64,000 nt of DNA from Stylophora pistillata. Lineage: Eukaryota. Made by a program: the position numbers and the translations under genes. Positions 12,801-55,456 of the stretch are shown one piece after another (position 1 is the first letter of the stretch; each line of letters starts with the position of its first letter). The notes under the pieces are model-generated. The model was given only the letters and a program-made list of their open reading frames with translations, was not told the origin of the DNA and did not search any database. The stretch covers positions 472,380-536,379 of the forward strand of contig NW_019217801.1 in NCBI RefSeq assembly GCF_002571385.2, in the 5' to 3' direction.

Positions 12801-15726
12801 TGGTTGAACTGAGAGACAACTCCTACCATCTAATCTTTGTGGGTGCACCTGATGGAAAACAGGAGGCAGTTATGGAAAACTTGCTGCAAAGTGGCATATT
12901 TAGACGACAGCTGACAGTGAGAAAGTTTTTGCAAAGTAAGGAGAAATTGAAAGAGTGTTTTTGTGAAGTTGATCTCTGCATTATGCCATCCCGGACGGAA
13001 GGGTTTGGTTTAACCGCATTGGAAGCCTTGTCGGCTGGTCTTCCCATTCTTGTTAGTGGAAACTCGGGATTGGGAGACGCACTGCGCACTGTACCATCCG
13101 GCAAATCTTTTGTGGTTGATTCTGAGGACCCCAAAGTGTGGGCTGAGGCAATTGCTGGTGTCCGAAAAATAAAGAGATCCCAACGTCTTCATGTAATTGA
13201 ACGACTTAGGGCAGCATATGAAGAGCATTTTAGCTGGGAGAAGCAGTGTGACCTTGTTCTGGATAAGATGTGGCACAAAGTATATGATGCAGGTCTGTTG
13301 ATGATAATTATATTTCGTTTTAAAGAAAGCGTTGTGTTGTTCTATCCTGCATTCATCCTCACATTGATGTGACAACATCTTGTACCAGGAAATAGGTTTC
13401 TGAAACAAAGTCTTATGGATAGTTTGAAATTTTTTAATTTCAAACTATAATAAAGAAACAAAGAAAAAGAAAGCAAAGAAAAAGAAAGAACCCTCTAAAA
13501 AAATTTTGTTATCCATACATTAATAAACCTTTATTTTAAAGCCTGAAAAAGTTAACATTGTAGATAGAATAATAAAGATGGTGGGTTTTTTAGCTCGGTA
13601 AAACTTTGCATATTTCGTATTCTATTTAAAAAACATAATGCTATCGATATTGCCGATCCTAGCAGTATGCTGAACGATTGTCTTATGTGAAATTCGTAAT
13701 GGCCTTGCTCGCCATAGAGTTTCTGTGGCTCTGCGGTAGTGGATCGGAGCGCGGAATCCAAAGGTCTGAGATTCGATTCTTCATAGGGACTCAGAATACT
13801 TTTCTCTGTCCCACGCTTTTGACAAGACGAAAAAACCTTTATCTAAATTCAATATTGTATAATGAGGTCACGTTAAAAGTTATCTGCTCCGGCTGTTCAC
13901 AATGCAATTATTGCTTTCGTTACAAAATAACAATTTTTTTATGATAAAAAAAAAAACAGCATTGTGGGGTGTTAACTGAAAAGTCTAGGCTATTACTTGC
14001 GACTTTTTATTCCAAAACTATTTCTCATTTTCGAATCAGAAGGTAGAGTTTGTTTATTTTATTTAACATGGTTATTGGCCTGAATAAGAACTCCCTGCTG
14101 TATTTTTCAATATTAAAGTATTCCCTCGTAGCTGAAAGAAGAACCCTGTCCCTCTCATTGAAAATTTTAGATCAACTTGTGTCCTCATTAAATATTTGTA
14201 CATACATGATCCTGTTGATAAAGAAAGATCTCGTTCATTTGATGGTAGCGCCCTCCATACAAAGTAAATCCGAGTACCTGATTGAATAACTGTCCCTCGC
14301 AGCCCTTATTTGGACGAATAGTAAACCACTGGCAGTTTAGTCGGGGCCACTAAGCCAGATCTTAAAAAGGTTTCACACAGCTTGTTGTACCCATATCGAA
14401 AGAGGTCCTAGTGGGTAAAAAAGATATTTATGAAAACTTAAACTTCGGTGTCAGATGTGATGGATTTTTTTCTCTGTCATAATTGAAACCTTCTCTTCCA
14501 ACTAGAGTTTATGATTCAAAGAAAAACACCTAATACGACTTTTCTTCAAGGGCTGCTTGAGCGAATCATCAAGAATCTTCAGAGGATGCAAATCTGCACA
14601 AGCAAGGTCGACAGCAACACTAACTTGACAGAAGAGTTAACAACGATTGTATCAGATAAGGGATTCAGAATTTCTGACAATCAAGGGTCAGGAAACTGCA
14701 TGTTCCATGCCTTGTCAGAACAGCTAGAAACCGTCAACGGAATCAAAACCCAACATGGCCAGTTGAGACGATCTTTAGTTCAGTACCTCAAGGAAAACCC
14801 AAAACTGGTGAGTTACTTTAAGCTACATGGGTAAAGAGAACTTGGGGTTGATCATCAGTTTTTGCTGCTGTGTTTATTTCTCTATCCGTAACGTGAACTG
14901 TTACTCCTCGCTGGGACACTAGTCCTTTTCACACAGATATCTGCAAGCATGTTTTCAGGTTGGCCTGACAATTTTCCCTGTGTTTACTTGTCTACTCACT
15001 CGTGGAGAGAGGCACTTTGACAGTGAAGTGTCTTCTCCAAGAGGTCGATAAGACAGTCACCCTATATAGGATTGTGTGGAGAGCTCTTACCGTGGATTTC
15101 AATGTCGTAAGCAAGAGGAAACGTAGTCTCTCTCCATGCATACTCTCATGTATTCAGAAGGACTCTCTTGCAAAATGTTGTTCTTAGTTATGTTAGTCGC
15201 ACGCTTAGAGAAATATGCCTGTTAGAATCAATGTGTTACCGTCAGTTTAGCTCGGCTCTAAATGAGGCGAACTTGTTTAAAGACCCACCTACCGGTCTAG
15301 ACGATATCTTTAAGCGACTATGTCTTCCTTTCTTCATTTAGGACTTGGTTAACATTTTACTCCCGGTGAAGAGGGTGCCTTTTTGTGACGATATCTTTGA
15401 ATTGTACTTGGCTCTTTCCAAATGCTTTTTGGTGTTTAAGTATTTATTGCTGTTTCTTCTTATAGCCGGATGGAACAGACCTGTCTCACTTTGTCCATGG
15501 ACATAAAACGTGGGCTGATTACCTGGCATATGTTGAACAAGATGGCGCTTGGGGTGACCACCTCATTCTCTGTGCAGCAGCAAATTTCTTTAAAACGTGC
15601 ATTCATGTGGTCAGCAGTCTTCACAATGATGTAGTCGTCAGGCCACATTGTCCTGTCGACGAAAGCAAGCCACTAGTACTGGGACATATTCATGAGGTAC
15701 ACTATGTCAGTCTTCAACCCATATAA
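314..15726 (+). CDS. Copy A: multi-exon Rab5-like-LRR-Roc-COR-GT4-OTU protein (5' exon outside window). Exons 314-400, 522-802, 1681-1780, 3566-4042, 5726-6174, 6301-6426, 7080-7830, 8065-8176, 8714-8963, 10692-11480, 12059-13292, 14551-14807, 15466-15726(TAA)
   Basis: Every exon is AG/GT bounded and phases chain without a frameshift (1,1,0,1,1,0,0,1,2,0,0,1,0). Splice sites are homologous to copy B. Confidence 0.8.
1940..2062 (+). mobile_element. Degenerate Gypsy-type LTR retrotransposon RT fragment in an intron
   Basis: Translates YGIALSSALAQHTGDVILQDLDNVESIHNDILVTGRDD, matching the PYGIASSPA.FQ...ILQG...DDILVTG consensus with a decayed YxDD. Confidence 0.6.
2293..2325. mobile_element. 33-bp micro-MITE / transposon footprint
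   Basis: 15-bp perfect inverted repeat CATAGTTAATAGAGG-gga-CCTCTATTAACTATG flanked by direct repeat GTCACAT. Confidence 0.6.
3566..4042 (+). CDS. Copy A leucine-rich repeat exon
   Basis: LxxLxLxxN repeats (VLNLSHNNF, LYVNDNRL, ELDLRNNQL, LFVEGNP). Acceptor at 3565 is in frame with the Rab exon donor at 1781. Confidence 0.9.
4716..4760. repeat. (ATT)n microsatellite
   Basis: Direct observation. Confidence 0.9.
5345..5682 (+). mobile_element. Short deletion derivative of the Crypton-like element at 9188-10630
   Basis: Shares the 5' end (ataaaatctcg..tctgattggttaacgaagc..aaacgaggctaagtga) and the 3' hairpin ending ttttcctata. Confidence 0.65.
5726..7830 (+). CDS. Copy A Roc GTPase domain split by a charged low-complexity insert (exons 5726-6174, 6301-6426, 7080-7830)
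   Basis: P-loop GQDRAGKTS, switch I STDGIEI, G3 WDFAGQHLYYAAHPVF, G4 VGTHAD. Confidence 0.9.
6462..6881. mobile_element. MITE with imperfect TIRs inserted at TA
   Basis: TATAGG..TTGTTTACA..CTCATT.GCAT at the left end versus its reverse complement at the right end; interrupts the duplicated intron segment. Confidence 0.6.
8065..11480 (+). CDS. Copy A COR domain exons (8065-8176, 8714-8963, 10692-11480) ending in a Cys/His-rich segment
   Basis: PYMGEKIPVRWFNFE, MLNFYHDLGIIV, QWLI, LMEQFGLI, YFVPCQL, VPHGLFTRLV typical of COR following Roc; CVECPYC..C..H..C tail. Confidence 0.85.
8222..8425 (+). mobile_element. Penelope-like terminal repeat fragment with decayed hammerhead core
   Basis: gcgaagggctaatactcgaaacttcagct..ggccaatttaca..tatcaactcagttgataaaac..ccaccgacgcagcaccac; related fragment inverted near 54425-54462. 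Confidence 0.5.
9188..10630 (+). mobile_element. Non-autonomous Crypton-like (tyrosine recombinase / DUF3504) element, specific to copy A
   Basis: 9544-9640 translates KISELTGHANPGSISICSHNLLEKQQRMSSKL (YR box II TGH..Y with Tyr>Cys); C-terminal LFTNVSFNNSPVNISINF; ~70-bp-arm hairpin at 10481-10627. Confidence 0.65.
12059..13292 (+). CDS. Copy A GT-B fold, GT4-like glycosyltransferase exon (intact)
   Basis: EWNSSMGGLST, VHT, FGRGD..LKGYD, MPSRTEGFGLTALEALSAGLP (Ex7E motif), FSWE. Confidence 0.9.
13640..13845 (+). mobile_element. tRNA-derived SINE-like repeat shared by both paralogs (copy B at ~35425-35625)
   Basis: gtggctctgcggtag..cggagcgcggaatccaaaggtctgagattcgattc A/B-box-like motifs at orthologous intron positions. 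Confidence 0.6.
14551..15726 (+). CDS. Copy A OTU-like cysteine protease / deubiquitinase (exons 14551-14807, 15466-15726)
   Basis: GSGNCMFHALSEQL (catalytic Cys), WGDHL, HYVSL (catalytic His). TAA at 15724-15726 lies 1 nt before a GTAAG donor. Confidence 0.85.
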
Positions 15727-16299
15727 GGTAAGAATGGAGAAGTACAGTACACCTACTGTTCAATATGAAAATGATGACAAAAACTGAAGTTGTTACACTC
15801 GGACTTTGAACTATTCTCGAATCTTTGCGAGTACTCAGATTTAACAGAGGGAATGAAGTAAGCTTTCCACTTCCTTACTTGCTCGACACAGCAGCGTCTT
15901 CAGGGACTTAAAATGCACTTTTGCCATCGTTTTATAAGTCGCACAGAATCATAAATTAAACTTAAAACTATATTCTTTCTCCATTTACTTTCTGTTTAAT
16001 GTTAGCCCTGAATGAAGAGTATCTTGGCTTGGAATTTAACTGGTAGCATGCAGTGTTACTTGGAACTGATCATTTCTTGTTTGTAGTGAAAAGATGGCAA
16101 CCGAAGACAACGTCTGAAAAGCAAATTTAACATTCATTTATCCAGTTTTTAGCTATACTAAGATAAGCTATTTGTATTTGAACAAGAGTCACTCGCTGAG
16201 AGAACTTTGCAAAGCAGTCAGAAGTGTTCACGAATCACACCTGCTGAGTATGAAGTCGGTGAGACCTCATGTACGCCTTACCCGTTGTGACTCGTGCTA

Positions 16300-16655
16300 T
16301 ATGAATATGAATATAGTTTATATCTGATCACTTGCAGCCCAGAGGCTGAATTACGGGTGCAGTGTAAGGTTGAGAACAGACGTCAGCATATCAGGCGCCA
16401 CTGGCAGCCCCTTCAGTCTATCGATCTCACCTCCTCACCCATCCCACCCCAGGGGAGGACATCCATCACACAGTAATCCATTTATTCGTCCCTATCCGAG
16501 AAGACTAGAATATCTAACCATTTCTTGATGTTATAGAAAGGTAGCAAATTCTTCTCAATTATTTTAAGACCTTGAGTGTTGGTCCGGCCGGGGCTCGAAC
16601 CCTCGACCTCCCGCACAACAGTCCAGCGCTCTATCCATTGAGCTAACCGAGAGGC
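16300..16655 (-). mobile_element. tRNA-derived SINE, specific to copy A
   Basis: Minus strand GGTTAGCTCAATGG (A box) .. GGTTCGAGCCC (B box), then a body also seen at 23245-23517 and 46310-46527; absent at the homologous copy B site (~37810). Confidence 0.8.
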
Positions 16656-17437
16656 CTTGCCTCTCATATGATGGGCTGACTTCTTGTCGATCCTTGTCTT
16701 TGCTCCCATTGTTTTTCTCGAGGTTCTCTTTTACTTCCATAATTTTAACTTTCCCAATTCCAACCCCTATGCGGAAAACCATTTTTTTGGATATGAAACT
16801 GTGAAACTCTTGCTTGTTTTCTAATTGCGGTGTTTTTCGTTGCGTTTACAGGCTAAAGTTACACAAACCGACATGGCTTCAAATCGGCAAGACTTCCACA
16901 AAGAATCAGAAGGCAGCCATTAAATACTGGTGTTAATTTGGAGATATTTTCTTTCATATAACCATGTGCTCGACAAAAAATATCAGCTGCAGATGAAACA
17001 TAACTTTTTAGAGGTCGTCGGTTGTTCGGTTTGGATGAGCTTTGTCAATGATACTGCTGCTATCGATTTTTGGTGGTTTCATCAGTATTTTGATTTGAAA
17101 GAGATAATTTATTTTTAGAAATTGCTATCAATACTCGGCTGAATATTTGGAGTTAATTAATTTTTAGGAAACTTTTGCGTCTAAATACCTTATGATAACG
17201 AGTAGTCCTTATTTACCCCTCCCCCACAAGGAAGACTCTGGCAGCAGCTGCTCTCTATATTCATTCAACAAATGGATGGTCACAGTAACGGATTTTTCTC
17301 ACCCAATCGTGTTTTCATGTACATAAAGGTTTTAGCCTGATTACTTGGGATATAGCTTTTACAACCACATCGATCGAACGTTTAGACGGAGAAAAATGAT
17401 CCTCGGGAAAATGCGTTGAATGGAATTGTTGTATTCG

Positions 17438-17597
17438 TGCATAATGTATACTATGTAAGTTCCTTTATTAGAAAATAATTTAGCTAGGAAACTTTAGGTA
17501 GATGACTTTTTGGTAGGTGCATAATGCATACTATGTAAGTTCCTTTATTAGAAAATGAATTAGCAAGGAAATTTTTGGTAGATGGCCCTTTGCTAGG
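17438..17597. repeat. Tandem duplication of an ~80-bp unit (single in copy B)
   Basis: gtgcataat..tactatgtaagttcctttattagaaaat..ggtagatg occurs twice. Confidence 0.85.
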
Positions 17598-18454
17598 GAA
17601 AACCAAAATTAGGGTAGGTTTCGTGTTGCAATGAAAACGTTGATTTTTAAATCTCCTAAAGAAATATATAGACCGTCTTTATATTTTAGTGAGAACTGCA
17701 TCATGAAACTCACTACAGCTAACCAATAACTTAACTGTGAAATTTTTAAAAAGACTTGTTAAAGGGAAATTCGTGTCCAACTTCTAAAAGACAAGTTTTT
17801 TGTCTTTGCATTAAATCACTGCGGCCCAGTCTGTGTCATTTTTTACGCTTCCAAATATTGTTCCATGAGAGAAACGACACATCGCTTAAGATATCTCTGT
17901 AAATTGCTACAATTTGTTATTAAGTTTTTAATTCTACGACTATTAATTTATTACTTTAAGAGGACGCCTCGACAAAAATGTGTATCCAATTGTATCCAAT
18001 TAGAATTTCAGAAATTATAGTCTACGGTAATGTAAGACCTTCACTCTCTGAACGTAAACACTTTTGCAAATTTACTATTTTACCTTTAATCTAGAAGTTC
18101 AATATTAGCATGTAATCGGTTGATGAGCTGCAACTTCTGAAGTTTTCTCGCCTTGGCGGGTAAGGTTGCCTTGTCAGGCTGGACATTTTTTGTTAATCAC
18201 AAAACACTTCGGTTTCCCACCTGAGATGAGATTGCTAATCCTTTCCTTCGGTGATTAATTGTGACCAGCTTCACTTGGCAGAGAGAGACTGAGTGCCTGA
18301 GTGGACAGCCGTTGGCACAACTCCATTTCAACGCTCCGTAGAGCTGTTTCGAGAGGCAGGGTCCCGATTCTGTATAACTAGATCCTTAATGCTGCTTCTC
18401 GCCTTTGCTTTGAGGATACTTTCTAAGTCCTTGGGTTTTCCTCCCTCTGTTTGG

Positions 18455-19115
18455 ATAGTTAGATAGTTTAGATAGTTTATTTACTTGAAAGACATTGCAA
18501 CCAAAGGTTGAATTACGTATTCATTTGCAAATTTAAGAAATATATAAGAAATGGTAACATACTTTTAAAATATTAAAATTAGGTAACATGGATAGAGTCA
18601 GCTCATACAAAGCGTGCGTAAATTATGAAAGATAAAACTATCGCGGTACCTGTTCGTACGGACCACAGGTAAATTAAAAGCGCGCTTTTTCCTTAAGTCC
18701 ACCCTAGATACATTCCTGGGCGGCAGGAACTTATGCAGCTTGTGACCTGGTACAAGAACGTTAGAAAAGAGCTTGTTGGAAATATTCTCGCGCCGCTCAT
18801 GCAGGGAGATAAGCCCAGTGCACGCTAGCGCCTCGTCATATTCTTTATCAGGGAAAATTATACGTAATGCGCGCTTCTGGCATCTTTCTAAAACAACTGA
18901 TAGATATTGAGGTAGGCTGCTGTGAAAGAGAGCGCATGCGTATTCTATAACAGATCTAATACATGTAAGATAGAATAAAACGAGCTCCTTAGACTTAACC
19001 TGGGCGCGCTTTAAATGGCGTAGGAAGTAAAGCCGCTTGTTGACTTTCTTTACTGTCTCATCTACATGTGTGTTCCATTTAAGATCGACGGAGAAGGTGA
19101 CACCTAACATCTTAG
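18455..19115 (-). mobile_element. 5'-truncated non-LTR retrotransposon (CR1/L2-like) RT C-terminus with short tandem tail
   Basis: ORF 18598-19110 LGVTFS.DLKWNTHV..KRLYFLR.LKR..YLTCIRSVIEYAC..LERCQKRALRII; AATAAA plus (AACTATCTA)n tail. Confidence 0.9.
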
Positions 19116-24881: not shown

Positions 24882-24912
<31 letters not shown>

Positions 24913-24937
24913 TGCGTATGTTACAATGTACAGATAT

Positions 24938-24989
<52 letters not shown>

Positions 24990-25105
24990 ATTGAATTACA
25001 AATATCCAATGATCCAGTTTTTAATAATATCTATTAACACACAAATTAAGTCATAGAGTCACTTATTTATTGTGAAAGGCTTTGTGTCATTCTTGATAGT
25101 CACTG

Positions 25106-27093
25106 ATGGCATTACGCTTCAGAATTCCATTGGAGTTTGATGTGGTGCTCCAGGGTAAGTGGAAACAAAATGAATTTTAAATCAGCAGCATACCGGCAAC
25201 TTTATTTTTTAGTTCCTCTTACCTTAGCATGGATTATTTTGAAAGTTTCCTATGTCATAAATTATTAGTAAGTAAATCATTTAACTGAAAAACATGTCCA
25301 TTTTCAAGTTATTAGAGAAAATAAGTAGATATGTATGTACATCATCATACATGTCTCAAAAAGCACCTGTACAATTGTTGATTTAAATTTTATCTGTGGT
25401 ACCTGATGTCCATAAATTACTTAGTCAGTGATTTGATAATTGACAAAAAGTCACTTGTTTATATCCAGTTTTTATTTAGATATTTGATGGTTGAAAAGCA
25501 AAGAAAAACTGCCCATACAAGATTGCTACCTGGGCAAACCAAGGACCATCTGCAAACATTAAACATTTTGCTTCAAGTCTGTTCCTTTTATATTCCAATT
25601 TTTAATCCCCTGCAAACATTTAATGTAAATACGGTTCTCATGATAATCTGTGTTTAAGTTTTTAAATTTCTTTTGTGGCTATGTATTATGAAACAGGAAG
25701 TTCATCTGTGGGAAAATCGAGCTTGTTTGATAGATGTGTTTATGGGCGTTTTCCTGATTTCCAAGAATATCCCATGTGGAGAGGTGAGGTAAACGTTTCG
25801 TAATGAGCATACAAGCGATCAAATTATATTTTTGGGAGTTCAGTGATGTACCTCTTATCCAAAATGTTATTTGAATTTAAATTTGTGTTCATTTCTACTT
25901 TTAGTTGAGTTTGTTAGGAATGAAGTATATCTGCGTCATGGCATGTTGAGAGTGCAACTTCGAATATGGGATTGTCCTCATTTGGAAATGAACCTTTATC
26001 TAGATTTTTATAACTTCTCCCGTGGATTTGTTGCTCTGGTTTTGTATGACATAACACAGAGATGTACATTTGAGAGCGCAAAAGAGTGGGTTGACATTTT
26101 CTCTAAGCGGGTCGAGGGAGTTGACTTTGTAGCACTTGTGGGGAGTAAAGCAGATCTTGAGAGCAGACGGGAGGTGTCCTCTGAGGTAATTGATTTGTCC
26201 ATATTTATATGATGCCATTGTACCACAGTACCGCTCAAGTGTCTTACCGCTCACGAGTACCGCACTGCAAGCGCGGAACACGCACACTGCGTGTCATAAA
26301 ATGTGAACTTACGTTAGTGTAGATCAGTCAAACGGATCTTATTAAACACGCGTACAAAAGTGCGTGTAATAAGGCAAAAATATTCCATTGGTAATCCTTA
26401 AGATTTCCGACAAACACGAGCGTGTCACTCCACCCATTCTGGGACCGTTGATACATGGGAACACCCTACGAGTCTTTTGAAATCGTATTTGTGAGACGGA
26501 AAGTGTATGGAGCAACGATTGCGGGCAATTGACATCCTATTTGCTGAAACACCGACCTCTTCAGTTTTAACCGACCCCAACAACTCCATGCCCGTCACAC
26601 AGATGTCAGCAATCTGACATAGGCACCATAGTTTTTCACGAGAATGATATAACAAACGGACCGACCAGAACTACCTTATTTGTCTATGATTTCGAAAGTA
26701 ACCAGTCGTGCACGACTTATGCTATACCAGAGTGTTACAGTCAATAACATCATGGCAGAACGACCGTGACAATCACCACTAGTAACAACAGTCCTTCCTA
26801 AGGCCAGTTGCAATCGAATGATCAGACTGCACAATCAACTGTGGCTCCATAGTGTAGGCTATTTGCTGTAAAATCTAAATTCAGTTTTTATCATACTCGC
26901 GAAACTAACTTCATATTATTCTAGAAAAGCAGCCTGTACACGTAGTTATTTAGCAGTTGGAGACTTCAACTTTATCAGAATTTGTTCTTTTAGGAAGCTC
27001 AGAGTTATGCTGATGGAATCGATATTATTGAAATTTTCATGGAAGTGTCAGCAATGAGTGGTGAAAATGTTGAAGACCTGTTCTGCAAAGTAG
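25106..27093 (+). CDS. Copy B Rab5-like domain (4 exons)
   Basis: GSSSVGKSSLFDRCVYGRFPDFQE (cf. Rab5 [24 protein letters not shown]), WDCPHLE, GSKAD, EAQSYAD, EVSAM. Confidence 0.85.
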
Positions 27094-30000
27094 GTATGTG
27101 GAATTTCCTATTCACTCGAGTCAAGTGGCACAAGAGCTTATCACGATTATTTTGGCGCGAAGTGACTTGGAGAATTGCTACTCCCACCACGATGAAGTAT
27201 TGCTAGTCCATTGCAGCTTTTTGCCTAGCATTGCCCCATAAAGTAATGTCAGATGTCAAGCTTTTCTCGTAATGTTCATAGTTTCGAGAACCATGGGGGC
27301 TTCTAACGCTTTCCAGAATCTGTTGTCGTTCTTATCACTTTTTACTGGTCTCTGGTAAATATATGGGATGCAGGAGGTTTTCTGTTTTGCATGTGAGACA
27401 AATCTCCAGCAACACCACCTTCAAGTGTCATTATACAACCTTTATTTCTTTTCAATCATGTGATAATTGTTATATCAGTAGCCGCGTGCATTCTCAGACT
27501 GCCTATCGTTTTACTAACGCCAGTTTACTTGAGTAAAGAAAAAGCTCCCTTTGCAATTTGAAATTTCCTAATAGTGTTTTTTAAACTAGCTGGGCTTCGT
27601 TAAACATCAGCGATTTCGTTCATGATGTTCCACATGACAGGTAAACCATATCTTAAAGAGTTCATGCCAACCACTGGCTAGAGTCAAGTCATCTGTTAAA
27701 CGGCTTGAAAAGATCTTCCAAAAACTTTCTTTGAAGAGTCCCCGTAGGGAACATGACGTCTTCAAAAATAAAGAAGTTAATAGGACTAATGAGAGACAAA
27801 GAGGATGAAGCAGATCTGTAGATATGTCGATAGTGTCAGTGTCGGCATTTACGTTGAGCTGTTAAATAATTTTGGTTGTTGTTGATCTGTTTTGCATTTG
27901 TCTTTTGTCTCGTGCTTACATTTTTTCGTTATATCGGGGTATATTATACCTTTGGGCTTCTGGATTGTGTTCGTTATAACGAGGATTTCGCTTTATTGAG
28001 GTTCTTCCCCATACGTTGTAAGGTAACTTTTACCTGTAACTGTATAAAGTTTTGTTCATAGTGTCAAAACAAGGTTATTCCTGGTACCTCAACGAGAGTT
28101 ATTAATTTTTCAAAGCTTTGTTTATCTTTCTTAGTATAGAACTCCAGCTCCAGACAGTGAATTACGATGTGATGCGTAAATTTTTTTTCTAATCCTATTT
28201 TGCAGCGGAACGTTTAACTGCAGCCATATCCGTCATCGACCAAGGAATTGCTACGAGAAAGGAAACGTTGGATCTAAGTAACAGGAATTTGTACAGGATT
28301 TCGCGGTATGACTTCCTGATTACAGCTATTCCCCCACGGCACCATTTACTTGCAAATATTCGAGTGCTGAATTTGAGCCAAAACAATTTTACATGGCTTC
28401 CTGATATTGCACTAGGCTTAGTAAACCTGACGTACTTATATGTAAATGACAACAGACTGTCCTCCCTGCCTGAAAGTATGAAATGCCTGGTAAGACTTCG
28501 AGAGCTGGATTTGAGAAATAACCAACTGAAGGAGCTCGGTGTAGTTAGAGAACTCTCTAAACTTGAAAAACTGTTTGTGGAAGGAAATCCTCTCAGACTA
28601 GAGGAAATTCGAAGTCTTGTTAAGCACGTGGATAGAACTAAAAGAAGAGTCTTGATGGACATTGCAGGTAGGTGTTAACTATTACCATGGATGTTTAGCA
28701 TACTCGTGTGCAATGTCAACTTGTGGGTACGATTGTGTGGCGTGATGGCTGCATTAATGTTTAACTTAGTTTGGTGTTTTAAGATGGACTTCTCTGTACG
28801 GATGAACGGATGAGAGCCTGAAGTAGGTCAAAGGTCAAGCCTTTTTTTCCATCGTTGGGTAGAGATCCATATTGCCATAAACACAATCTTCAAACATCCT
28901 TTTGCTAATTACGATTGCTTGCTTATGCTCTTTGTTATTTGAAAGGAATTCGATTCGTGCGAGTGTTTGATCAAAATTTGTTAGCAAATCCATCTGGCTC
29001 TACTGTCACGGAGTATTTTATTGAAGAAGATGTAGCAGTAGAAATCATACTTTTATTGTTGTTGAACGTAGTTTTAATGTACTTTACAGTGTAAAACCCT
29101 TTTTCAGGTATTTCATAGTTTAAAAAAGAACCTTGCTTGAAGGTTATTATTGCTTGAATCATTTAAATTAATCTTTTGACAGCCGATTTAATGTTCATCG
29201 TAGTTCATTATAAGAATGTCCTCACCCGTGTTGTATTCATAGTTCGACCATTTACTGCAGAACTGTTCTTTTTTTCTACAATTTGCGGTTGGAGAGAGCT
29301 TTTGAATTGTGCAGTTATAGGGAAGTCTATTAATAATAATGTGAAATATAATGTAATATTAACGTTTCCTTTACCCTCGCTTGCAGCTGTAGCCCCTTCC
29401 GAAATTTTGGCGAAAGGTCATTCTGCAAAAATTGTTTATGAAAAGGCCCTTAGAGATGGATTTGTGAATGTTTATCGAGGTCGCATAGTATTGGTTGGCC
29501 AGGATCGTGCTGGTAAAACAAGTTTGAAGAAGACGCTCTTAGGTCTGCCATTTGACTTCAAGGAACAAAGTACGGACGGAATCGAAATTGAGCCGTCAAA
29601 GTTTGAAATTGAAGTTGACCAGATTAAGAACTGGACTCCAACTTCCAACAAGTCAAGTTTATCTGAATGTTCGGAATATAAAACATGCATAGCAAAAATG
29701 TTAGCAACAGAACGGTATCACACGATTGTTGGTAGTAAGAAGGAAGACTCCAGAATGAATTCAACATGGGCCCAGCCTAAGGAGGAACGAAAAGTGGAGT
29801 CAGAAAAAGAATTAATCACTAAAGATGCTGTCGCTGATGAGGTCTGTTTCCTACGTTTTCACTTTGAACCTTGATTTTTTCGGTATGAAACGCATAGAAT
29901 AATGTAAAAACGGTTTACACTTAAAACGCTTATTTCATTGCTTTGACATAACGAGATAGATATCGACACTTACTGTGTAAATGGGAATGCATGAACCATG

Positions 30001-33000
30001 CAATTTCTTACGCAGTTTGGTATCCACATTATTTATTTTTCGTCTCATTTCAAAATCTTAGGTGTTTCTGAAAGAGGACTCGGCCACTAAGTTTGCAGAT
30101 AGATCGTCGTCAAGTGAAATTCGTCAAGGAGAGAAAGGGAAGAGTTCTGATTACAGTATGACTCCAAGCAGAAAGTTTGAAATGGGTATCAACGCAACCG
30201 CTCTTCCTAATGCCGTTAAAAAACATGCTGATCAACTCTTAAAGAACATGGTCCTTGAAGGTGTGGATGTAGAAAGTAAAAATATTAAGGAAGGAACCAC
30301 TATAACTGCAGATGTGTGGGATTTTGCGGGTCAACATCTGTACTATGCTGCTCACCCGGTATTTCTTTCGTCAAGAGCTGTATACATTGTAGTTCACAAC
30401 CTTAGCAAGCCACTGAATGCCCAAGCTCAGCCATGTGTCAGACAGGGAACTCATGAAGTAACTTTGGAGAACCCGAACAATGAGACAAATTTGGAGAATC
30501 TGCTTTCGTGGCTCATGACAGTTCGTAATATGAGACCAACTGGAGAGGAAAAAATTGAAACTTCTAACCTGCCCTATCTCCGGCCCCCGGTGTTCATTGT
30601 CGGTACCCATGCTGACAAGCCTTGTGAAGATACTAAGGATGTAACATCTAAGATACACCGTGAGATTTCCAGTAAGGAATTTGGAAAGCACGTGATCAGA
30701 CCTTTCTTCTGTATTGATAACACACAAGCTGGCAGATCATTTGCTTGGAAAATCTGGAATTTCTTTACATTTCGAAGAAATTGTCAAACAGGTAAATCAT
30801 GTACTTAGGTTCAACATCATGTGTTCATGAGGTTTACTTTCATTTCTATCGAGAACAGACAAACTCATCGTTAAATAAAGTTGATTGGATTCACGGGAGA
30901 TTTTCTAGTAGATTTTTTCACATCTTATTCATGGCATCGGTTTGTTCCCAATCTGGATATTTTCCTACTAGTCATGCTGGCATCCTCTTGGTGCTTCTGT
31001 CATTCCTGGAATTTTTTAGTATGAGTTTCCGCTATTTTATTTGGTTCATTTCTTGTTGTATTAACCCGGATTGCATATTTTAATACTATGGAGAATGTTT
31101 CCGTTAACCAAATTATCTTTAACTGGTGAAATTTATAATTCATGGCAGAAAAAAGTAAATTACAAGTTGAGTGCCACAGCGGAGAGAGACCTCTCCGAAT
31201 ACGAAACTGTTGATCATACTCTTGATCATAGTTGCCATCAAAATTGCATCGAAAGTCCAAAGAGAAAGTTCTGCTCCTCCTTGGTTGCTCTTAACGGTAC
31301 TTATTGTTTGATGTCATTTATTATTGAAAGGTCAAGAAGGAGACAATGATAGCACCAGTGCCAGTGGAATTCATGCTCTTCGTGCGAGAATCCTGGAAAT
31401 CCTTCAACAGGAACCTTATATGGGAGAGAAGATACCAGTGAGGTAAAATATGATGTATGATGATTCAAGCACGAGATGTTGAGCTCATTTTTTTCCAGTA
31501 CTGCTTAGCTTAATGTGTAAGGTACTTTGCCATCATATTACATACCGGTGAAGTTATAGAAAGTACAGCGTAAAGGGTACTTTGACGACTCCGCTTTGGG
31601 CTTAAAACCACCGTGTCAATGCCTTCTCCTAAATTGGTAATACAATTTATCAAACCTTCGTTTGTTATGTGTTGAATTTAAACTTAGTTGAAATCTGGTA
31701 ATAAATAACATGTTTTTGTTTCCCCGCATAATTTGTTAAAACTCTTTGGATCAATGTAAGGAATGCTACAAATATCAATTTTTTCCCGCTGAATGCGTAC
31801 AAATTGGTATTCCTTTAGACCGGGAATTTGTTTTTGGAGTGTAAGGCGACGAGCGGAACAACTTATTTTCTCCTGTTGCTTTTTTTTTTTATTTTTGTTT
31901 GAACTTGTTACGTGTTAAATTAGCATGTTAACATGGCTTGTACATTTGATGTATCCACGAAGGATATTGAACATGATATCGAGCCATATTCGAAAGTTCC
32001 ATTTAGACATTTCTAAACTTTGCCACGTGCAACATGGTAAGTGAATTGTTGCTAAGTGAATTCTTCATATTTCTAGATGGTTCAACTTCGAAAAGGTCAT
32101 TGAATCTTTGGTAGCTGAAAATGTATACCACACGAATATTGCCAATCTTCAAACCTATGCCAAGGATGTGTGTTTTATAGAAGACGATGAACAGTTTCAT
32201 ACCATGTTGAGTTTCTATCACGACCTTGGTATGATCGTGAGACACCGCAATACAGTCATTCTGAAGGTGCAGTGGCTGGTTAGCCTATTCAAGAAACTTG
32301 TAACCATTCCACCATTCAAAAAAGCGGTAGGAAAATTTAATTTACTGTGCACCGAGTTCATCAAATAATGCAGGATGTGTTACCTTTCTGCCACTTCACA
32401 TAAAAAACAATGATTGTCTGTTTGTTAGTTTGATTGTTTCATCATATGGTTGGCACCTTCTACAACATTTTAAGTTTTCTTTATAACCTGCATGTCTTCC
32501 CTCTTTCTCCTTTCAATATTGCGTAATGTAAACAAAGTGTTCAATCATTTATTGCAATATTGTTTGGGAGGGGGTGAAGGGGGGTAAGGGGGACGTTCAA
32601 GTATCCAATTAGAGATGAATTACAAGATTTTTGTTCTTACGTCGAGTGGAGATTTTTTGTCCACCCTCTAAGGGGAGGCGTACCAACTTCGTTTTAACCA
32701 CTAATTGCAGCTTTAGTAATGGGGAAAGAGCAGATTTTTTAGGTAGGTCCACTGTAAAATGAATAGAGCATTTTCAAGAAAAAACTGTTGTGAACCTATT
32801 TTGAATAGGGTCTTTGTGGTTTCAGGATCCTGTGCATTCTAAGTACTGGCTTGAGCTCGAGAGAAGTGGTGTCCTTAAGATGGAGCTTGTTGATCACGTT
32901 TTCTCCACTCTTATTCAGCAAGGCGTTAACAAAGAAGACATCTTGGACATGATGGAACAGTTTGGTTTGATTGCCAAATACTCACCATCCCTGGCTGACG

Positions 33001-36000
33001 TTAAGTATTTTGTCCCATGTCAACTGAGATCCTCACCTAAAGAGCTTTGTGACATGGTACCGTCTCCTACAGATCCTTGTCCTTTGTATCTTCATTTCCA
33101 AGAAGGTTTTGTCCCGCATGGTCTCTTTACCCGCCTTGTCTCAAAATCAGTGTCCTGGTGTTGTGCGAATGGATCGTCACAGGAACCAAAACTCTACCAG
33201 AATGGTGCATGGTTCGTTCTTGAAGGAAGCGTCATGCATGATATGATTCTGATTTGTAAAAAGAACGTCATAAAAATCCTCTTGAGACAAAGAACTGAAG
33301 ATGAAGCAGTTCCAGTGTCTCACTCAGCTTCAGAGGAAGTTGCTAGAAGTGTGCGATTGTTTGTAGAGAAAGTTCTAGAAAAGATGTCAGAGGAGTTCCC
33401 ATACCTGAGCAGGCTGCAGTATGAATTTTGTGTTGAATGCCCCTACTGTCGGCAGGGAAGCCGCCAGTGCACAAACCACAAGCAAGTGTCCTGTGCAGAA
33501 GATGACTGCTTACACCTGCTTGAATTAAAACAAGGGCAGAATTTGATATGTATGGAAAGCATGTCTGAGAAAGTACTTAGAGTTTCTGGGCAAGAAAAAT
33601 GGTTCTTAAACCAGGTTTGAAGCATTCTTGGTATGTCCCTCGCAATAGTGAACGGAGGTCTATTAAAAAGAGCTTATGTTGGCTGCAATGATATTGCATT
33701 GTGCTAGGTTTTTGAACAGTTTCAGTCACTGGCATCCTCTGAATTGAAATACTAAATTTAGAAAATCGTCCTGTGCATTAGATAGTTTAAAATAGCTTAC
33801 CTCAAATCCGTAAATACTTCAGCAATACTTTACGAGATTCTATATTGCGCAATTGCGGACTTCACTTTTTTTTTCGGTGATGAATACGTATAAGGAGTTT
33901 GCAAAAGGTCTGTCGATCTGGATTTTATTTTCGTGATAGCAAACAGGATGTCATACTCTTTTGACAAAATAAGGTTGTTTCAGTTAAAATTGTTTTATGT
34001 ATCGTACTTGCAAAATGACCAGCTTTCCTTTAAATGTATCTCTGTTGTAATTTTCCAAAAGGTTTTGGCTCCGTCAGTGATAAATACCTCACAAGCTGCA
34101 CCAGTTGGTGGTCACCCCGCAAAGTCCAACAAAGCAATGAGAGTTACTCTTCTGGCCAATGAGTGGAATTCATCAGTGGGGGGTTTGTCCACCATCAATC
34201 GACAGCTTGCCATACTTTTGGCCAAACGCACTGAATTGGAAGTCTCTCTCCTAGTTCCACAATCTGCTTGTTCTGAAGAAGAGAAGAGAGCTGCACAAAG
34301 TCACAAGATTGTCATCAAAGAGGCAGAGAGACGTCCAGGCTTCGACCCTCTTGATTGGTTGAGCTTTCCCCCGAAAGACCTTGTCATCGACGTGGTCGTG
34401 GGTCATGGAGCCAAGTTAGGTAAGCAAGCCCAAATCATTAGAAAGTCTCACTGCTGCCAGTGGATACAAGTAGTGCATACTGCGCCTGAAGAGCTTGGAA
34501 TGTTTAAAAACGCCGCCAGAGCAGTGGTTGAATTGAAAGAAAACGCCTACCATCTGATCTTTGTGGGTGCACCTGAAGGAAAACAGGAAGCAGTTATGGA
34601 AAATTTGCTGCAAAGTGGCATATTAAGACGACAGCTGACAGTGAGAAAGTTTTTGCAAAGTAAGGAGAAATTGAAAGAGTGTTTTTGTGAAGTTGATCTC
34701 TGCATTATGCCATCCCGGACGGAAGGGTTTGGTTTAACCGCATTGGAAGCCTTGTCGGCTGGTCTTCCCATTCTTGTTAGTGGAAACTCGGGATTGGGAG
34801 ACGCACTGCGCACTGTACCATCCGGCAAATCTTTTGTGGTTGATTCTGAGGACCCCAAAGTGTGGGCTGAGGCAATTGCTGGTGTCCGAAAAAAGAAGAG
34901 AGCCCAACGTCTTCAAGACATTGAACGACTTAGGGCAGCATATGAAGAGCATTTTAGCTGGGAGAAGCAGTGTGACCTTCTTGTCGATAAGATGTGGCAC
35001 AAAGTATATGGTGCAGGTGTGTTGATGGTTTTTATACTTCGTTTCATAGAAAAGTGTTGTGTTGTTGTATCCCGCATTAATCCTGTCATTGATGTGAAAA
35101 CATCATGTACCACGAAATAGGTTTCTGAAATAAAACATCTTGTACCACGAAATAAGTTTCTGAAACAAAGTCTGATAGATAGTTTTAAATTTTTTTGTAT
35201 AACATCACTGTTTGCAAAAATGAAAACGATTTGCACCAGCTGATAGGAGTTAAATAACAAAGCTAAAGAAAGAACCTTCTAAAAAACAGTTGTATCCATA
35301 CATTTGTAAACCTTTATTTTTAAGCCTGACAAAGTTTATATTGTAGATAGAATAATAAAGATGGTGGGTTTTTCATCTCGGTAAAACTTACCATATTTCG
35401 TTTTCTATTTACAAAACATGATGCTATCGACATTGCCGATCCTAGTAGTATGCTGGACGCTTGTCATCTATGAGCTTGGTAATGGTTTTGCTCGCTATAG
35501 AGTTTCTGTGGCTCTGCGGTAGAGCATCGGAGCGCGGAATCCAAAGGTCTGAGATTTCATGCTTCATGAGGACTCAGAATACTTTTCTCTGTCCCACGCT
35601 TTTGACAAGACAAAAAAACATCTTTCTCTAAATTTGATATCGGTTATTAGCCTTACTGAGAACTCCTCGCCGTATTTTTCAATTTTTTTAAGTCTTCCCT
35701 CGTAGCCGGAAGAAGAGCCTTGTTCCTGTCAGTGAAAGTTTTGGATCAATTTGAGTTCTCATGAAGTATTTGTACATACATGATCCTGTTAATAAAGAAA
35801 GATCTCGTTCATTTGATGGTTGCGCCCTCCAAATAAAACGAAATCCGAGTAGCTGATTGAATAACTGTCCCTCACAGCCCTTATTTGGGCGGATAGTAAA
35901 CCACTGGCAGTTTACTTGTGGCCAAGCCAGGTCATAAAAAAGTTTCACGTAGCTTGTTGTACCGATACCAAAAGAGTTCCCGGTGGATAAAAATGATATT

Positions 36001-37281
36001 TATTGTAAACTTTAACTTCGGTCTTAAGTGTGACGGATTCTCTTCCAACTACAATTTATGATTCAAAGAAAAACAGCTAATATGATTTTTTTTCAAGGAC
36101 TGCTCGATCGAATCATCCAGAATCTTCAGAGGATGCAACTCTGCGCAAGCAAGGTCGAAAGTAGCACTAACTTGACAGAAGAGTTAACAGCGATTGTAAC
36201 AGATAAGGGCTTTAGAATTTCTAACAATCCAGGGTCAGGAAACTGCATGTTCCAGGCCTTGTCAGAACAGCTTGAAACCGTCAATGGAATCAAAATCCTA
36301 CATGGCCAGTTGAGACGATCTTTAGTTCAGTACCTCGAGGAAAACCCAAAACTGGTGAGTTACTGTAAGCTACAGTTACTGTAAGCTAGGTACAGTTACT
36401 GTAAGCTAGGTAAAGAGAACTTGGGGTTGATCATCAGTTTTTGCTGCTGTGTTTATTTCTCTCTCCGTCACACGAACTGTTACTCCTCCTTGTTGGGACA
36501 CTAGTCCTTTTCACACCAGATATCTGCAAGCATTTTTTCAGGTTGGCTTGACAATTTTCCTTGCGTTTACATGTACACTCACGCGTAGAGAGAGGTGTAC
36601 TTTGACAGTGAGTTGTCTTGTACAAGAGTACGATAAGACAGTCACGCTATACAGGATTCTGTGAAGAGCTGTTATCGTGGATCTCAATTTCTCAAGCAAG
36701 AGGCACCGCAGTCTCCGTCCATGCGCATTCTCTTGTATTCAGATGGACTCTCTTGCAGAATGTTGTACTTAGTTATGTTAGTCGCAAGCTTAGAGAAATA
36801 TGCCTTTCAGAATCAATGCGCTACCGTCAGTTTAGCTCGGCTCTAAATGAGGCGAAGTTGTTTGAAGACCCTCCCACCGGTCTAAGCGATATCTTGAACG
36901 ACTATGTCTTCCTTTCTTTATTTTTGACTTAGTTAACGTTTTACTCCCGGTGAACAGGTTGACTCTTTTGTGGCGATATCTATTTGGAATCGAAATATTT
37001 ATTGCTGTTTTTGTTACAGCCGGATGGAACAGATCTGTCTCACTTTGTTCATGGACATGAAACGTGGGTTGATTACTTAACATGCATGAAACAAGATGGC
37101 GCTTGGGGAGATCACCTCATTCTCTGTGCAGCAGCAAATTGCTTTAAAACGTGCATTCATGTGGTCAGCAGTCTACACAATGATGTAGTCATCAGGCCAC
37201 ATTGTCATGTTGATGAAAGCAAGCCACTAGTACTGGGACATATTCATGAGGTACACTATGTCAGTCTTCAACCCATACAGG
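25106..37281 (+). CDS. Copy B: multi-exon Rab5-like-LRR-Roc-COR-GT4(deleted)-OTU protein, ~1,600 aa plus an unresolved 3' tail. Exons 25106-25154, 25697-25783, 25905-26185, 26994-27093, 28206-28667, 29387-29841, 30062-30791, 31331-31442, 32077-32326, 32826-33614, 34062-35016, 36098-36354, 37020-37281
   Basis: ATG at 25106 reads MALRFRIPLEFDVVLQG (cf. Rab5 FKLVLLG). All 13 exons are GT-AG and phase-consistent (4,789 coding nt). Confidence 0.82.
28206..28667 (+). CDS. Copy B LRR exon
   Basis: Paralog of 3566-4042; VLNLSQNNF, YLYVNDNRL, ELDLRNNQL. Confidence 0.9.
29387..30791 (+). CDS. Copy B Roc domain (exons 29387-29841, 30062-30791)
   Basis: GQDRAGKTS, WDFAGQ, GTHAD. Confidence 0.9.
31331..33614 (+). 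CDS. Copy B COR exons (31331-31442, 32077-32326, 32826-33614)
   Basis: Same exon sizes (112, 250, 789 nt) and motifs as copy A. Confidence 0.85.
34062..35016 (+). CDS. Copy B GT4-like exon with a 93-codon in-frame deletion
   Basis: 955 nt versus 1234 nt in copy A; reads GMFKN|AARAVV at ~34510. Confidence 0.85.
36098..37281 (+). CDS. Copy B OTU domain (exons 36098-36354, 37020-37281)
   Basis: GSGNCMFQAL, WGDHL, HYVSL; reading frame open through the donor at 37282. Confidence 0.85.
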
Positions 37282-38008
37282 GTAAGAGTGGAACACAGCA
37301 CAGTACACATGCTCTTCAATGTGAAAATGATTACTAAAACTGAAGTTGGAGCACTCGGACTGTTAACTCTTCTCGAATCTTTGCGAGTAGTCAGATTTAA
37401 CAGTGGGAATGAACGAAGCTTTCCACTTCCTTACTGGTACAACACAGCAGTGTCTTAAGTGACTTAAGATGCACTTTTGCTATTGTTTCATGAGTCCTAC
37501 AGAATCATAAATTAAGCTTCAAACTATATTCTTTCTCCATGGCTCTCAGAAATGATAGCAATGTTACTTGAAAATGATCATTTCTAGTTTGTCGTGAAAA
37601 GATGGTAACCGAAGAAAACGTCTGAAAAGCAAATTTGACATTCATTCATCTAGTTTTTTAGCCATACTAAGATAAGTTATTTGTATTTGAACAAGAGTCA
37701 CTCGCTGAGAGAACTTTGCGAAGTAGTCAGAAGTGTTCACGAACCACACTTGCTAAGTATGTAATCGACCTCATGTACGCCTTGCCCCGTTATAACCCGT
37801 ATTATATCCGGGACGTTACCTCTCATATGATGGGCTGAGTTTTTGTTGATCCGCATCTTTGCCCCCAGTGTTTTTCTCGAGGTTCTCCTTTACTACCCAT
37901 AAATCAACATTCCCAATTCCAACCCCTATGCGGAGAACCATTTTTGGATATGCAACTGTGAAATTCTTGTTTGTTTTCTAATTGCAGTGTTTTTCGTTGT
38001 GTTTACAG

Positions 38009-55027: not shown

Positions 55028-55456
55028 NNNNNNNNNNNNNNNNNNNNNNNNNNNNNNNNNNNNNNNNNNNNNNNNNNNNNNNNNNNNNNNNNNNNNNNNN
55101 NNNNNNNNNNNNNNNNNNNNNNNNNNNNNNNNNNNNNNNNNNNNNNNNNNNNNNNNNNNNNNNNNNNNNNNNNNNNNNNNNNNNNNNNNNNNNNNNNNNN
55201 NNNNNNNNNNNNNNNNNNNNNNNNNNNNNNNNNNNNNNNNNNNNNNNNNNNNNNNNNNNNNNNNNNNNNNNNNNNNNNNNNNNNNNNNNNNNNNNNNNNN
55301 NNNNNNNNNNNNNNNNNNNNNNNNNNNNNNNNNNNNNNNNNNNNNNNNNNNNNNNNNNNNNNNNNNNNNNNNNNNNNNNNNNNNNNNNNNNNNNNNNNNN
55401 NNNNNNNNNNNNNNNNNNNNNNNNNNNNNNNNNNNNNNNNNNNNNNNNNNNNNNNN
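55028..55456. other. Assembly gap
   Basis: Run of N. Confidence 1.

Follow-up and report, generated by a model that had tools for sequence, protein, structure and literature searches.

Effector-triggered immunity via integrated decoys is characteristic of plant NLR proteins (e.g., RRS1-WRKY and RGA5/Pik-1-HMA). To our knowledge, guard- or decoy-type sensing is represented in animals by few cases, such as pyrin, which guards Rho GTPases, and the NLRP1 tripwire. Rab5 is a target of effectors from several bacterial pathogens in other hosts, and small G proteins deficient in GTPase activity (or pseudoGTPases) include the Rab5 Q79L mutant, Rnd, RhoH, and CENP-M. Proteins with the architecture LRR+AP-GTPase(Roc)+COR+GT4 have been predicted to act in bacteria as counter-invader systems, and an expansion of GT4 is described among coral immune-like proteins (Kaur et al., 2021; PMC8195603). 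The GT4 architecture table of that study contained no "GTPase+LRR" string; the part of the table holding the Acropora digitifera, Branchiostoma floridae, and Saccoglossus kowalevskii entries contained no architecture joining a Rab domain to an LRR, the nearest entry in that part being the amphioxus ImmLRR+LRR+sGTP+OTU+GT4. The Roco reviews consulted do not feature an N-terminal Rab domain, and a literature search returned no coral ROCO or NLR protein bearing a Rab domain.

The window (the whole stretch of 64,000 nt analyzed on Stylophora pistillata contig NW_019217801.1) contained a gene, copy B, and its tandem paralog, copy A, both on the plus strand. The domain order was: Rab5-like, LRR, Roc, COR, GT4 "conflict" glycosyltransferase, and OTU. 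Positions 25106-27093 of copy B comprised four GT-AG exons of 49, 87, 281, and 100 nt that encoded the Ras-family domain, while exons 2-4 of copy A lay within positions 314-1780. Exon 1 of copy B (25106-25154), assigned from sequence and an RNA joint, contained the ATG start and the beta-1 strand and ended in phase 1, within the Gly codon just before the P-loop. For copy A, no exon 1 was found in the window, the upstream edge of which is adjoined by a 5.7-kb run of N.

Exon 2 (copy B, 25697-25783; copy A, 314-400, with AG/GT borders taken from sequence) encoded the P-loop SSSVGKSS in both copies, followed in copy B by alpha-1 and a divergent switch I (DFQEYPMWR; RFKVIPSTE in copy A). Exon 3 (copy B, 25905-26185; copy A, 522-802) encoded, in copy B, the interswitch, a degenerate G3 (WDCPHL), switch II, beta-4 (VLYDIT), alpha-3, and G4 (SKAD); the corresponding copy A motifs were WDTMYM, VVYDIT, and NKAD. 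Exon 4 (copy B, 26994-27093; copy A, 1681-1780) encoded EAQSYAD, the G5 motif EVSAM, and the first half of alpha-5 in copy B, and EARDYAD and EVSAK in copy A. Exon 3 matched Pfam Ras (PF00071) with E-values of 1.6e-16 (copy A) and 2.6e-10 (copy B), both above the curated cut-off, and its assignment to the Ras family is far beyond chance in both copies. These readings bear out most of the preliminary description, which had listed VGKSS, YDIT, and EVSA as conserved, reported the loss of the usual DTAGQ from G3 and the SKAD of copy B, and contrasted the two switch I sequences against equal exon lengths (87/281/100 nt). Its further scaffold motif, EAQSYAD, applied to copy B and not to copy A.

Copy B exon 4 and Rab5 exon 4 shared one end point, in phase 1. 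The exon stops midway through alpha-5, and so the Rab tail and its prenylation motif are absent; the Rab-like module had no C-terminal Cys motif. In both copies exon 4 ended without a stop codon and the LRR exon accepted phase 1 in frame. The copy B LRR exon (28206-28667; LRR_8, 8.4e-21, Pfam) had RNA joints at both ends, and the copy A LRR exon (3566-4042), with borders inferred from copy B homology, was 81% identical to it (blastn). The reading frame is possibly kept merely as the 5' coding exons of a long protein.

The remainder of copy B (29387-37337, with exon borders mapped to 30062) contained Roc in two exons, COR-A/COR-B, GT4-conflict, and OTU. The remainder of copy A (5491-14834), delineated by ORFs and Pfam, contained Roc, COR-A, COR-B, a full-length GT4-conflict domain, and the first OTU exon. 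The unit of analysis for searches, Pfam scans, trees, and codon tests was the single exon, and on this scale Roc scored 24.3 and 34 bits (cut-off 27), COR-A 23.8 bits (35.3), and COR-B 16.6 bits (27). The order and spacing of these Roc and COR matches, and the position of the LRR N-terminal to Roc, were those of the Roco/AP-GTPase family, and loci from the Tara coral metagenomes carried precomputed Roc and COR-A matches. The GT4-conflict profile (PF20706; 385 positions) matched copy A from position 2 to 383 with an E-value of 3.1e-83. Copy B was collinear with copy A (blastn), and its GT4-conflict match (1.8e-55) was split into two stretches because of an internal deletion relative to copy A. 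No NACHT or NB-ARC match was found by Pfam in the scanned ORFs. The gene order Ras, LRR, Roc, GT4 was repeated on Tara coral metagenome scaffolds, and a Desmophyllum pertusum gene model joined the Rab-like domain to the LRR.

Copy B was represented in RNA by GT..AG joints seen in polyA RNA contigs and raw reads. Joints were found between exons 1 and 2 (25154/25697; one X5 contig), exons 2 and 3 (25783/25905; X5 and X10), exons 3 and 4 (26185/26994), and exon 4 and the LRR exon (27093/28206; X5, X10, and four raw X24 reads, three runs), with further joints at 28667/29387 and 29841/30062. A single 655-nt X10 contig ran from exon 3 through exon 4 into the LRR exon. The Rab-LRR fusion of copy B is thus transcribed, as polyA RNA contigs splice 27093 to 28206, and a complete lack of splicing between the Rab and LRR exons, which the preliminary description named as a refuting outcome, was not what the RNA gave. 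Some contigs kept introns, and no differences between two RNA samples were found in copy B exons 2-3.

Descent of the module from Rab5, as earlier proposed, was supported by common intron positions and phases, reciprocal best matches, and a tree. All four exon borders and phases were those of the coral's own Rab5 gene (C283/L006), whereas at least seven other Rab loci of S. pistillata (e.g., L009, L012, L020, L026, and L027) were split elsewhere. The best non-self match of Rab5 exon 3 was a further family member, copy E (90.7 bits), ahead of the next ordinary Rab (74.9 bits), and the best non-family match of copy A was Rab5 (55.7 vs. 45.1 bits). In a profile search of 1.84e9 proteins, family fragments ranked at the top, and of the 86 single-domain matches below them that were kept for the tree, 58 had the Rab5 switch II signature. 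Both there and within the coral genome, the canonical Rab closest to the module was Rab5. The tree, built on the exon-3 region only, placed the family not outside the Rab5 group but within a clade (96/94) of Rab5-type proteins, and separated it from 14 other Rabs of the genome. Exon-3 identity to canonical Rab5 was 35-57%. Against PDB, exon 3 alone left the subfamily unsettled, with copy A scoring 57.5 bits to Rab5A and 57.0 bits to Rab1a, and copy B scoring about 39 bits to each of Rab2, Rab6, and Rab5C. Shared introns, reciprocal matches, and the tree show the module to be a copy of four exons of the coral's own Rab5 gene along with their introns, cut off after the first half of helix alpha-5.

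At least five copies (A-E) were present in the S. pistillata genome, and relatives were found in coral metagenome scaffolds and in D. pertusum. The P-loop GKS was invariant in 12 of 12 family members. The G3 motif read DTMYM (A), DCPHL (B), DTGGL (C), DSPDF (D), and DTAGA (E), and in seven relatives DTAGL, DTNGG, DTPGH, DTAGR, DTAGC, DTSGS, and NPSAM. The catalytic Gln was therefore lost in every member, none having the DTAGQ of a functional Rab5; it was replaced by M, L, L, F, and A in copies A-E, respectively, and four of the seven relatives had H, R, C, and G in its place. The Gly of DxxG was missing in copies A, B, and D. G4 was NKAD or NKVD in most members and SKAD (Asn to Ser) in B and D, and G5 was SAK in copy A and SAM in copy B. 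The prenylated Cys tail of a functional Rab5 was not present either, with exon 4 spliced to the LRR in mid alpha-5. Copies C and E retained G1, G2, most of G3, G4, and G5.

Since the Gln is lost while the P-loop, NKxD/SKAD, and SAK are kept, the Rab-like domain is probably a nucleotide-holding, non-hydrolyzing Rab5 look-alike. From these motifs, nucleotide binding is predicted in copies A, C, and E, and absence of hydrolysis from the lost Gln. Copies C and E would resemble the GTP-locked Rab5 Q79L, with A, B, and D further degraded. The term pseudo-GTPase used in the preliminary description fits the loss of the Gln throughout the family and is too blunt for C and E, which look GTP-locked rather than like nucleotide-free shells. 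Copy D, in which the exon-1 donor is mutated and a TGA lies in frame, shows that some copies are decaying; a Tara copy (on L044) had a 9-residue deletion in switch II. The NCBI gene model of copy C (XP_022800782.1) is a 189-aa "Rab-5B-like" protein. Current annotation splits at least one N-terminal module off as a "Rab-5B-like" gene.

In the Rab-like exon 3, omega was 1.16, and M2a was favored over M1a with an LRT of 49.3 (p = 2e-11) in a test that is prone to false positives if paralogs exchange sequence and on a phylogeny whose deep branches were saturated. With poorly aligned columns removed, the LRT was 43.6; it was 31.5 when restricted to gap-free columns and 38.3 when copy D and the Tara switch II-deletion copy were left out. 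The 17 null simulations gave LRT values of at most 6.1. Fifteen of the 20 sites with posteriors >0.95 (NEB via custom code, not BEB) fell within the interswitch/switch II half (Fisher p = 0.005). About a quarter of exon 3 sites were at omega 0.14, with purifying selection on P-loop-adjacent positions, the G3 (DxxG) Asp, IVVYDIT, and GNKAD, kept across at least three coral lineages. The LRR gave a weaker signal (M2a LRT 17.4), and the Roc, COR-B, and GT4 controls gave LRT 0 with omega 0.24-0.32. Pairwise NG86 dN/dS lay near 1, and pooling five sister pairs brought no significant excess over 1 (switch II 1.69, p = 0.23). Synonymous divergence was also greater in the switch half, and single-omega fits were alike in the two halves (1.23 vs. 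1.12), which only site-class models separated. From the 5' half to the 3' half, dS of copies A and B made a jump that points to gene conversion in the gene. The selection pattern is sensor-like and not one of even decay: variability, which had been attributed to the switch regions from sequence alone, was concentrated in the interswitch/switch II half, and the codon models backed positive selection.

With origin, splicing, motif states, and selection pattern as given above, the best explanation as a whole, to which we assign a probability of about one half, is a protein with a Rab5-derived, fast-evolving recognition end, a conserved Roc-COR switch, and a GT4/OTU output. The Rab-like domain and the LRR would form the recognition end, and the Rab effector face (interswitch, switch II, and alpha-3/beta-5 loop) would engage a quickly changing partner, most likely a microbial factor whose usual target is phagosomal Rab5. 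Once this bait was bound or modified, a signal might pass to the conserved Roc-COR GTPase, and this switch would then release the conserved GT4 and OTU output domains. The nucleotide state, the partner, and the relay are the parts of this explanation that we infer, and a bait role for microbial effectors is suggested by analogy. A Rab5-like module on an LRR-Roc-COR-GT4-OTU protein is a credible candidate for an animal counterpart of plant integrated decoys. A stronger version, in which this would be the first animal integrated decoy, a GTP-locked Rab5 mimic in a Roc-COR immune switch that traps microbial or symbiont factors manipulating Rab5 on phagosomes and unleashes a glycosyltransferase and a deubiquitinase, each paralog being tuned to another effector, is tentative and on balance doubtful. 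Any link of the family to symbiosis is weakened by its presence in D. pertusum, which is not known to have algal symbionts.

The same features could instead belong to a host-directed adaptor or regulator, the domain binding the coral's own Rab5 partners (GEF, effectors, or GDI-like factors) or another part of its own protein, placing or gating the ROCO on endosomes, with paralogs divided among host partners and no arms race. Human LRRK2 is recruited by Rabs via its N-terminal repeats, and C and E, which keep nearly all nucleotide-binding motifs and look GTP-locked, could recruit Rab5 effectors constitutively; purifying selection on nucleotide-binding residues is in keeping with such a role. 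The strongest diversifying selection, however, fell on the canonical Rab5 effector contacts (switch II helix and interswitch), and these residues differed even between close orthologs (copy E and its Tara ortholog). Because host Rab5 itself hardly varies between species, its partners would not be the cause of such change, and a domain without a prenyl tail cannot sit in a membrane alone. We consider this reading rather unlikely.

Should the captured exons be functionless and drifting, their frame preserved solely by the need to keep the downstream ROCO free of stops and frameshifts, an overall omega near 1, the destroyed G3 of A, B, and D, and the lesions of copy D and the L044 copy would follow readily. 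Decay of that kind is improbable given that the neutral-plus-purifying M1a was rejected (LRT 31-49), that the quarter of sites under constraint was kept in several coral lineages, that exon lengths and phases were preserved, and that variation was clustered rather than spread as an even dN/dS near 1. Least probable by far is a free-standing Rab-5B-like protein encoded beside the ROCO gene, the arrangement that the copy C model and the retained introns would suit: the joint to the LRR exon occurred in three runs, one contig linked exons 3 and 4 to the LRR, the phase-1 end without a stop and the phase-1 acceptor were found in both copies, the Desmophyllum model fused the two domains, and the C-terminal Cys motif was absent. 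For copy B, a separate gene is contradicted by the RNA joint itself.

If the recognition-end explanation is true, the decoy principle would have evolved convergently. The coral family may follow decoy logic with another switch, i.e., a captured trafficking GTPase wired to Roc-COR and to GT4 and OTU outputs. Confirmation would provide a handle on microbial factors that manipulate coral phagosomes, with a bearing on coral disease and symbiont uptake, and a natural Rab domain fused in cis for the study of ROCO biology, including the LRRK2-Rab axis.

Compared with canonical Rab5 (the coral gene and human RAB5A/B/C), the family was alike in its Ras-fold G domain, in its four exon borders and phases, and in the motifs xxVGKSS (P-loop), YDIT, GNKAD, and SAK, with (D/E)AQSYA(D/E) in copies B and E. 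It differed in the absent catalytic Gln, the DxxG Gly lost in A, B, and D, the rewritten switches I and II, the missing hypervariable tail and prenylation Cys, the fusion to an LRR, and an omega of about 1.2 against near invariance in Rab5. With GTPase-deficient G proteins and pseudoGTPases it had in common the lost Gln and retained nucleotide-binding motifs, DTAGLEEY of the copy C ortholog resembling DTAGLERY of the Rab5 Q79L mutant (PDB 7bl1); the dead coral G domain, in contrast, sits in a much larger multidomain protein and is under diversifying selection. The LRR and the probable Roc-COR core were common to the bacterial LRR+AP-GTPase+COR+GT4 proteins and MFHAS1-type metazoan Roco proteins, as were a C-terminal GT4 effector slot, a rapidly evolving LRR, and paralog expansion, whereas the coral protein has a second, Rab5-derived G domain before the LRR, an OTU after GT4, and an intron-rich animal gene. 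As in plant NLR integrated decoys, a copy of a host protein, here Rab5, lies within a sensor-switch-effector protein, its binding surface diversifying and the switch conserved. Plant decoys copy host proteins that pathogens commonly target, a status that is an assumption for coral Rab5, and the coral protein is animal, has no known paired helper, and carries the domain on a Roc-COR switch rather than on the NB-ARC of a STAND protein.

The window is eukaryotic DNA, part of contig C18 of the 398-Mb Stylophora pistillata assembly, and contained two tandem plus-strand copies of one very large ROCO-type gene. Copy A begins before position 1 and extends to about 18.1 kb; copy B spans 25.1 to about 39.1 kb. 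The Rab5-like exons of copy B, all with GT-AG borders on the plus strand, were located at 25106-25154, 25697-25783, 25905-26185 and 26994-27093 (exons 1 to 4). Copy A exons 2 to 4 occupied 314-400, 522-802 and 1681-1780 on the same strand and were identical in length to those of copy B (87, 281 and 100 nt). No exon 1 was found for copy A, and the 5.7 kb directly upstream of the window consist of N. Exon 3 of both copies matched Pfam Ras above the curated threshold. The Rab5-like motifs named in the preliminary description were all found, except that EAQSYAD occurred in copy B only, copy A having EARDYAD. Minus-strand retrotransposon fragments (reverse-transcriptase-like ORFs) flanked the gene pair at 18598-19110 and 55469-57075, and runs of N were located at 55028-55456 and 59879-60574. 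Beside the pair, a long ORF (48404-51820) encodes numerous TPR_12 repeats plus a CHAT domain (Pfam 4e-35), another immune-like architecture.

RNA from two polyA contig sets and two raw RNA-seq runs was aligned to 24900-30800 (5,901 letters), within copy B only. GT..AG joints were found at 25154/25697, 25783/25905, 26185/26994, 27093/28206, 28667/29387 and 29841/30062. A single 655-nt RNA contig joined exon 3, exon 4 and the LRR exon, the Rab-to-LRR joint was seen in three runs, and raw reads had the orientation expected for plus-strand RNA. In both A and B, phase 1 at the end of exon 4 agreed with phase 1 at the LRR exon acceptor. ORFs downstream of the Rab exons matched Pfam LRR_8, Roc, COR-A, COR-B, GT4-conflict (PF20706; 3e-83 in copy A) and OTU, with Roc and COR scores near the cut-offs because searches were run exon by exon. 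The Rab-like exons belong to the ROCO gene, and their splicing to the LRR exon was borne out by the RNA joints of copy B and the phases of both copies.

Just 5' of copy B exon 1, a short repeat (24900-25100) had very large RNA depth in both orientations, word depth rising to tens of thousands for the contig sets and to hundreds for raw reads; its many loose RNA ends suggest a highly expressed dispersed repeat, perhaps SINE-like. Further downstream, the GT4 exon of copy B (34500-34525) lacked about 270-280 bp present in copy A (12519-12787), and the copy B GT4-conflict match fell into two stretches.

The Rab-like module descends from Rab5, as had been claimed from the sequence alone. In the coral's ordinary Rab5 gene (contig C283, locus L006) the motifs are canonical, and the exon borders matched those of the ROCO copies in place and phase: inside the Gly codon preceding the P-loop, inside the Ala codon following TIG, after the Glu preceding (D/E)AQSYA, and one base past the Ile/Val of alpha-5. 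At least seven other Rab loci in this genome are interrupted at different positions. Since the capture ends in mid alpha-5, it lacks the Rab tail and prenylation site. The best non-self match of Rab5 exon 3 was copy E, a further family member (90.7 bits, against 74.9 for the best ordinary Rab), and the best match of copy A outside the family was Rab5. A profile of five paralogs, searched against 1.84 billion proteins, retrieved fragments of this family as top matches; ranking after these, 58 of the 86 single-domain matches kept for the tree had the Rab5 switch II signature. In a maximum-likelihood tree of the exon-3 region only, both family clades (97/93 and 95/91) fell within a 96/94 clade with Rab5-type proteins, and 14 other Rabs of this genome fell outside it.

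At least five copies were present in the genome, three of them (C, D and E) on contig C372. Copy C had the full architecture. NCBI annotation treats its Rab exons (38143-38600, L002) as a protein of their own, the 189-aa 'Rab-5B-like' XP_022800782.1. Assembly gaps separate these from the exon 4 and LRR of copy C, which are located 11-14 kb further downstream. Copy D (401-1429, L005), the nearest relative of copy B, was truncated by the contig end. AT replaces GT at its exon-1 donor, and its exon 3 has an in-frame TGA near the beginning; this copy has probably either become a pseudogene or come to rely on other splice sites. Copy E (141405-147590, L004/L034) was the most Rab5-like (G3 DTAGA) and contained Rab-like, LRR and OTU parts. 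The 20 kb searched 3' of its Rab exon gave no match to Roc, COR or GT4; in the orthologous Tara copy (scaffold L042), Roc, COR-A and GT4 were present downstream. Relatives on Tara coral metagenome scaffolds retained the order Ras, LRR, Roc, GT4. A Desmophyllum pertusum gene model also has the Rab-like domain fused to LRR; as this coral is not known to have algal symbionts, the family is not bound to symbiosomes.

The P-loop GKS was invariant in all 12 family members and NKxD was retained, B and D having SKAD. Every member had another residue in place of the catalytic Gln, and the DxxG Gly was absent from A, B and D. In copies C and E, as in their relatives, the Thr of switch I and the DT(A/G)G motif were retained; the copy C ortholog has the sequence DTAGLEEY, which nearly matches that stretch of the GTP-locked Rab5 Q79L mutant (PDB 7bl1). 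Judged by these residues, the Rab-like domain is probably non-hydrolysing, and the less degraded copies probably still bind nucleotide.

Between A and B, dN/dS was 0.67-0.71 in Rab exons 2-3 and 0.25 in Roc. Site models were fitted with our own GY94+F3X4 likelihood program, which matched the IQ-TREE likelihood and omega (1.16); in the Rab-like part, the test covered exon 3 only, in 12 family sequences. M2a was favored over M1a (LRT 49.3, p 2e-11), a value to be read with paralog gene conversion and saturated deep branches in mind. The fit placed 26% of sites in a class with omega 0.14, 29% in one with omega 1 and 45% in one with omega 2.9. Leaving out the poorly aligned switch II columns gave an LRT of 43.6, restricting the test to gap-free columns 31.5, and dropping copy D together with a Tara copy that has a deletion in switch II (L044) 38.3; in 17 simulations under M1a the LRT never exceeded 6.1. 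The interswitch/switch II half held 15 of the 20 sites with posteriors (NEB, not BEB) above 0.95 (Fisher p 0.005), the remainder mapping to alpha-3 or to the alpha-3/beta-5 loop. In human Rab5A numbering, with Q79 and N133 as alignment anchors, the selected block corresponds to A77, Q79, R81 and S84-R91, the effector-contact surface of Rab5. Purifying selection was seen at the Asp of G3 and in the blocks IVVYDIT, F-E-x-A-K and ALVGNKAD. Applied to other exons of these genes, the test gave omega 0.53 and LRT 17.4 (p 2e-4) for the LRR, and LRT 0 with omega 0.24-0.32 for Roc, COR-B and GT4. The Rab-like and LRR end is therefore the fast-evolving part, while the GTPase switch and glycosyltransferase are conserved.

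For the Rab, LRR and Roc exons, synonymous divergence between A and B was about 0.5-0.6; for COR-B, GT4 and OTU it was only 0.13-0.21. This drop, with values near 0.55 for the 5' half and near 0.15 for the 3' half, points to paralog gene conversion; the 3' halves of A (1-18100) and B (25100-39140) seem to have been homogenized by conversion or by a later partial duplication.

Rab5 marks early phagosomes, and bacterial effectors often target it. The integrated-decoy idea of the preliminary description, modeled on plant NLRs, predicts sensor-like selection on a host-GTPase copy, as found here. We give a recognition or bait mechanism for the Rab-like domain a probability of about one half; the strict version, a microbial decoy, is less likely than not. 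A host-directed adaptor is rather unlikely. Pairwise dN/dS in five independent sister pairs scattered about 1 and was not significant; a drifting relic is nevertheless improbable, as exon 3 departs from an even value near 1 in its M2a result and clustered sites, with Roc, COR-B and GT4 conserved. A separate gene, apart from ROCO, is contradicted by the RNA and is very improbable.

In bacteria, proteins with LRR, AP-GTPase (Roc), COR and a C-terminal effector, GT4 included, form a predicted counter-invader architecture, and GT4 is massively expanded in coral immune-like proteins (PMC8195603). Unlike the bacterial LRR/Roc/COR/GT4 proteins, the coral genes have an extra captured Rab5 domain in front.
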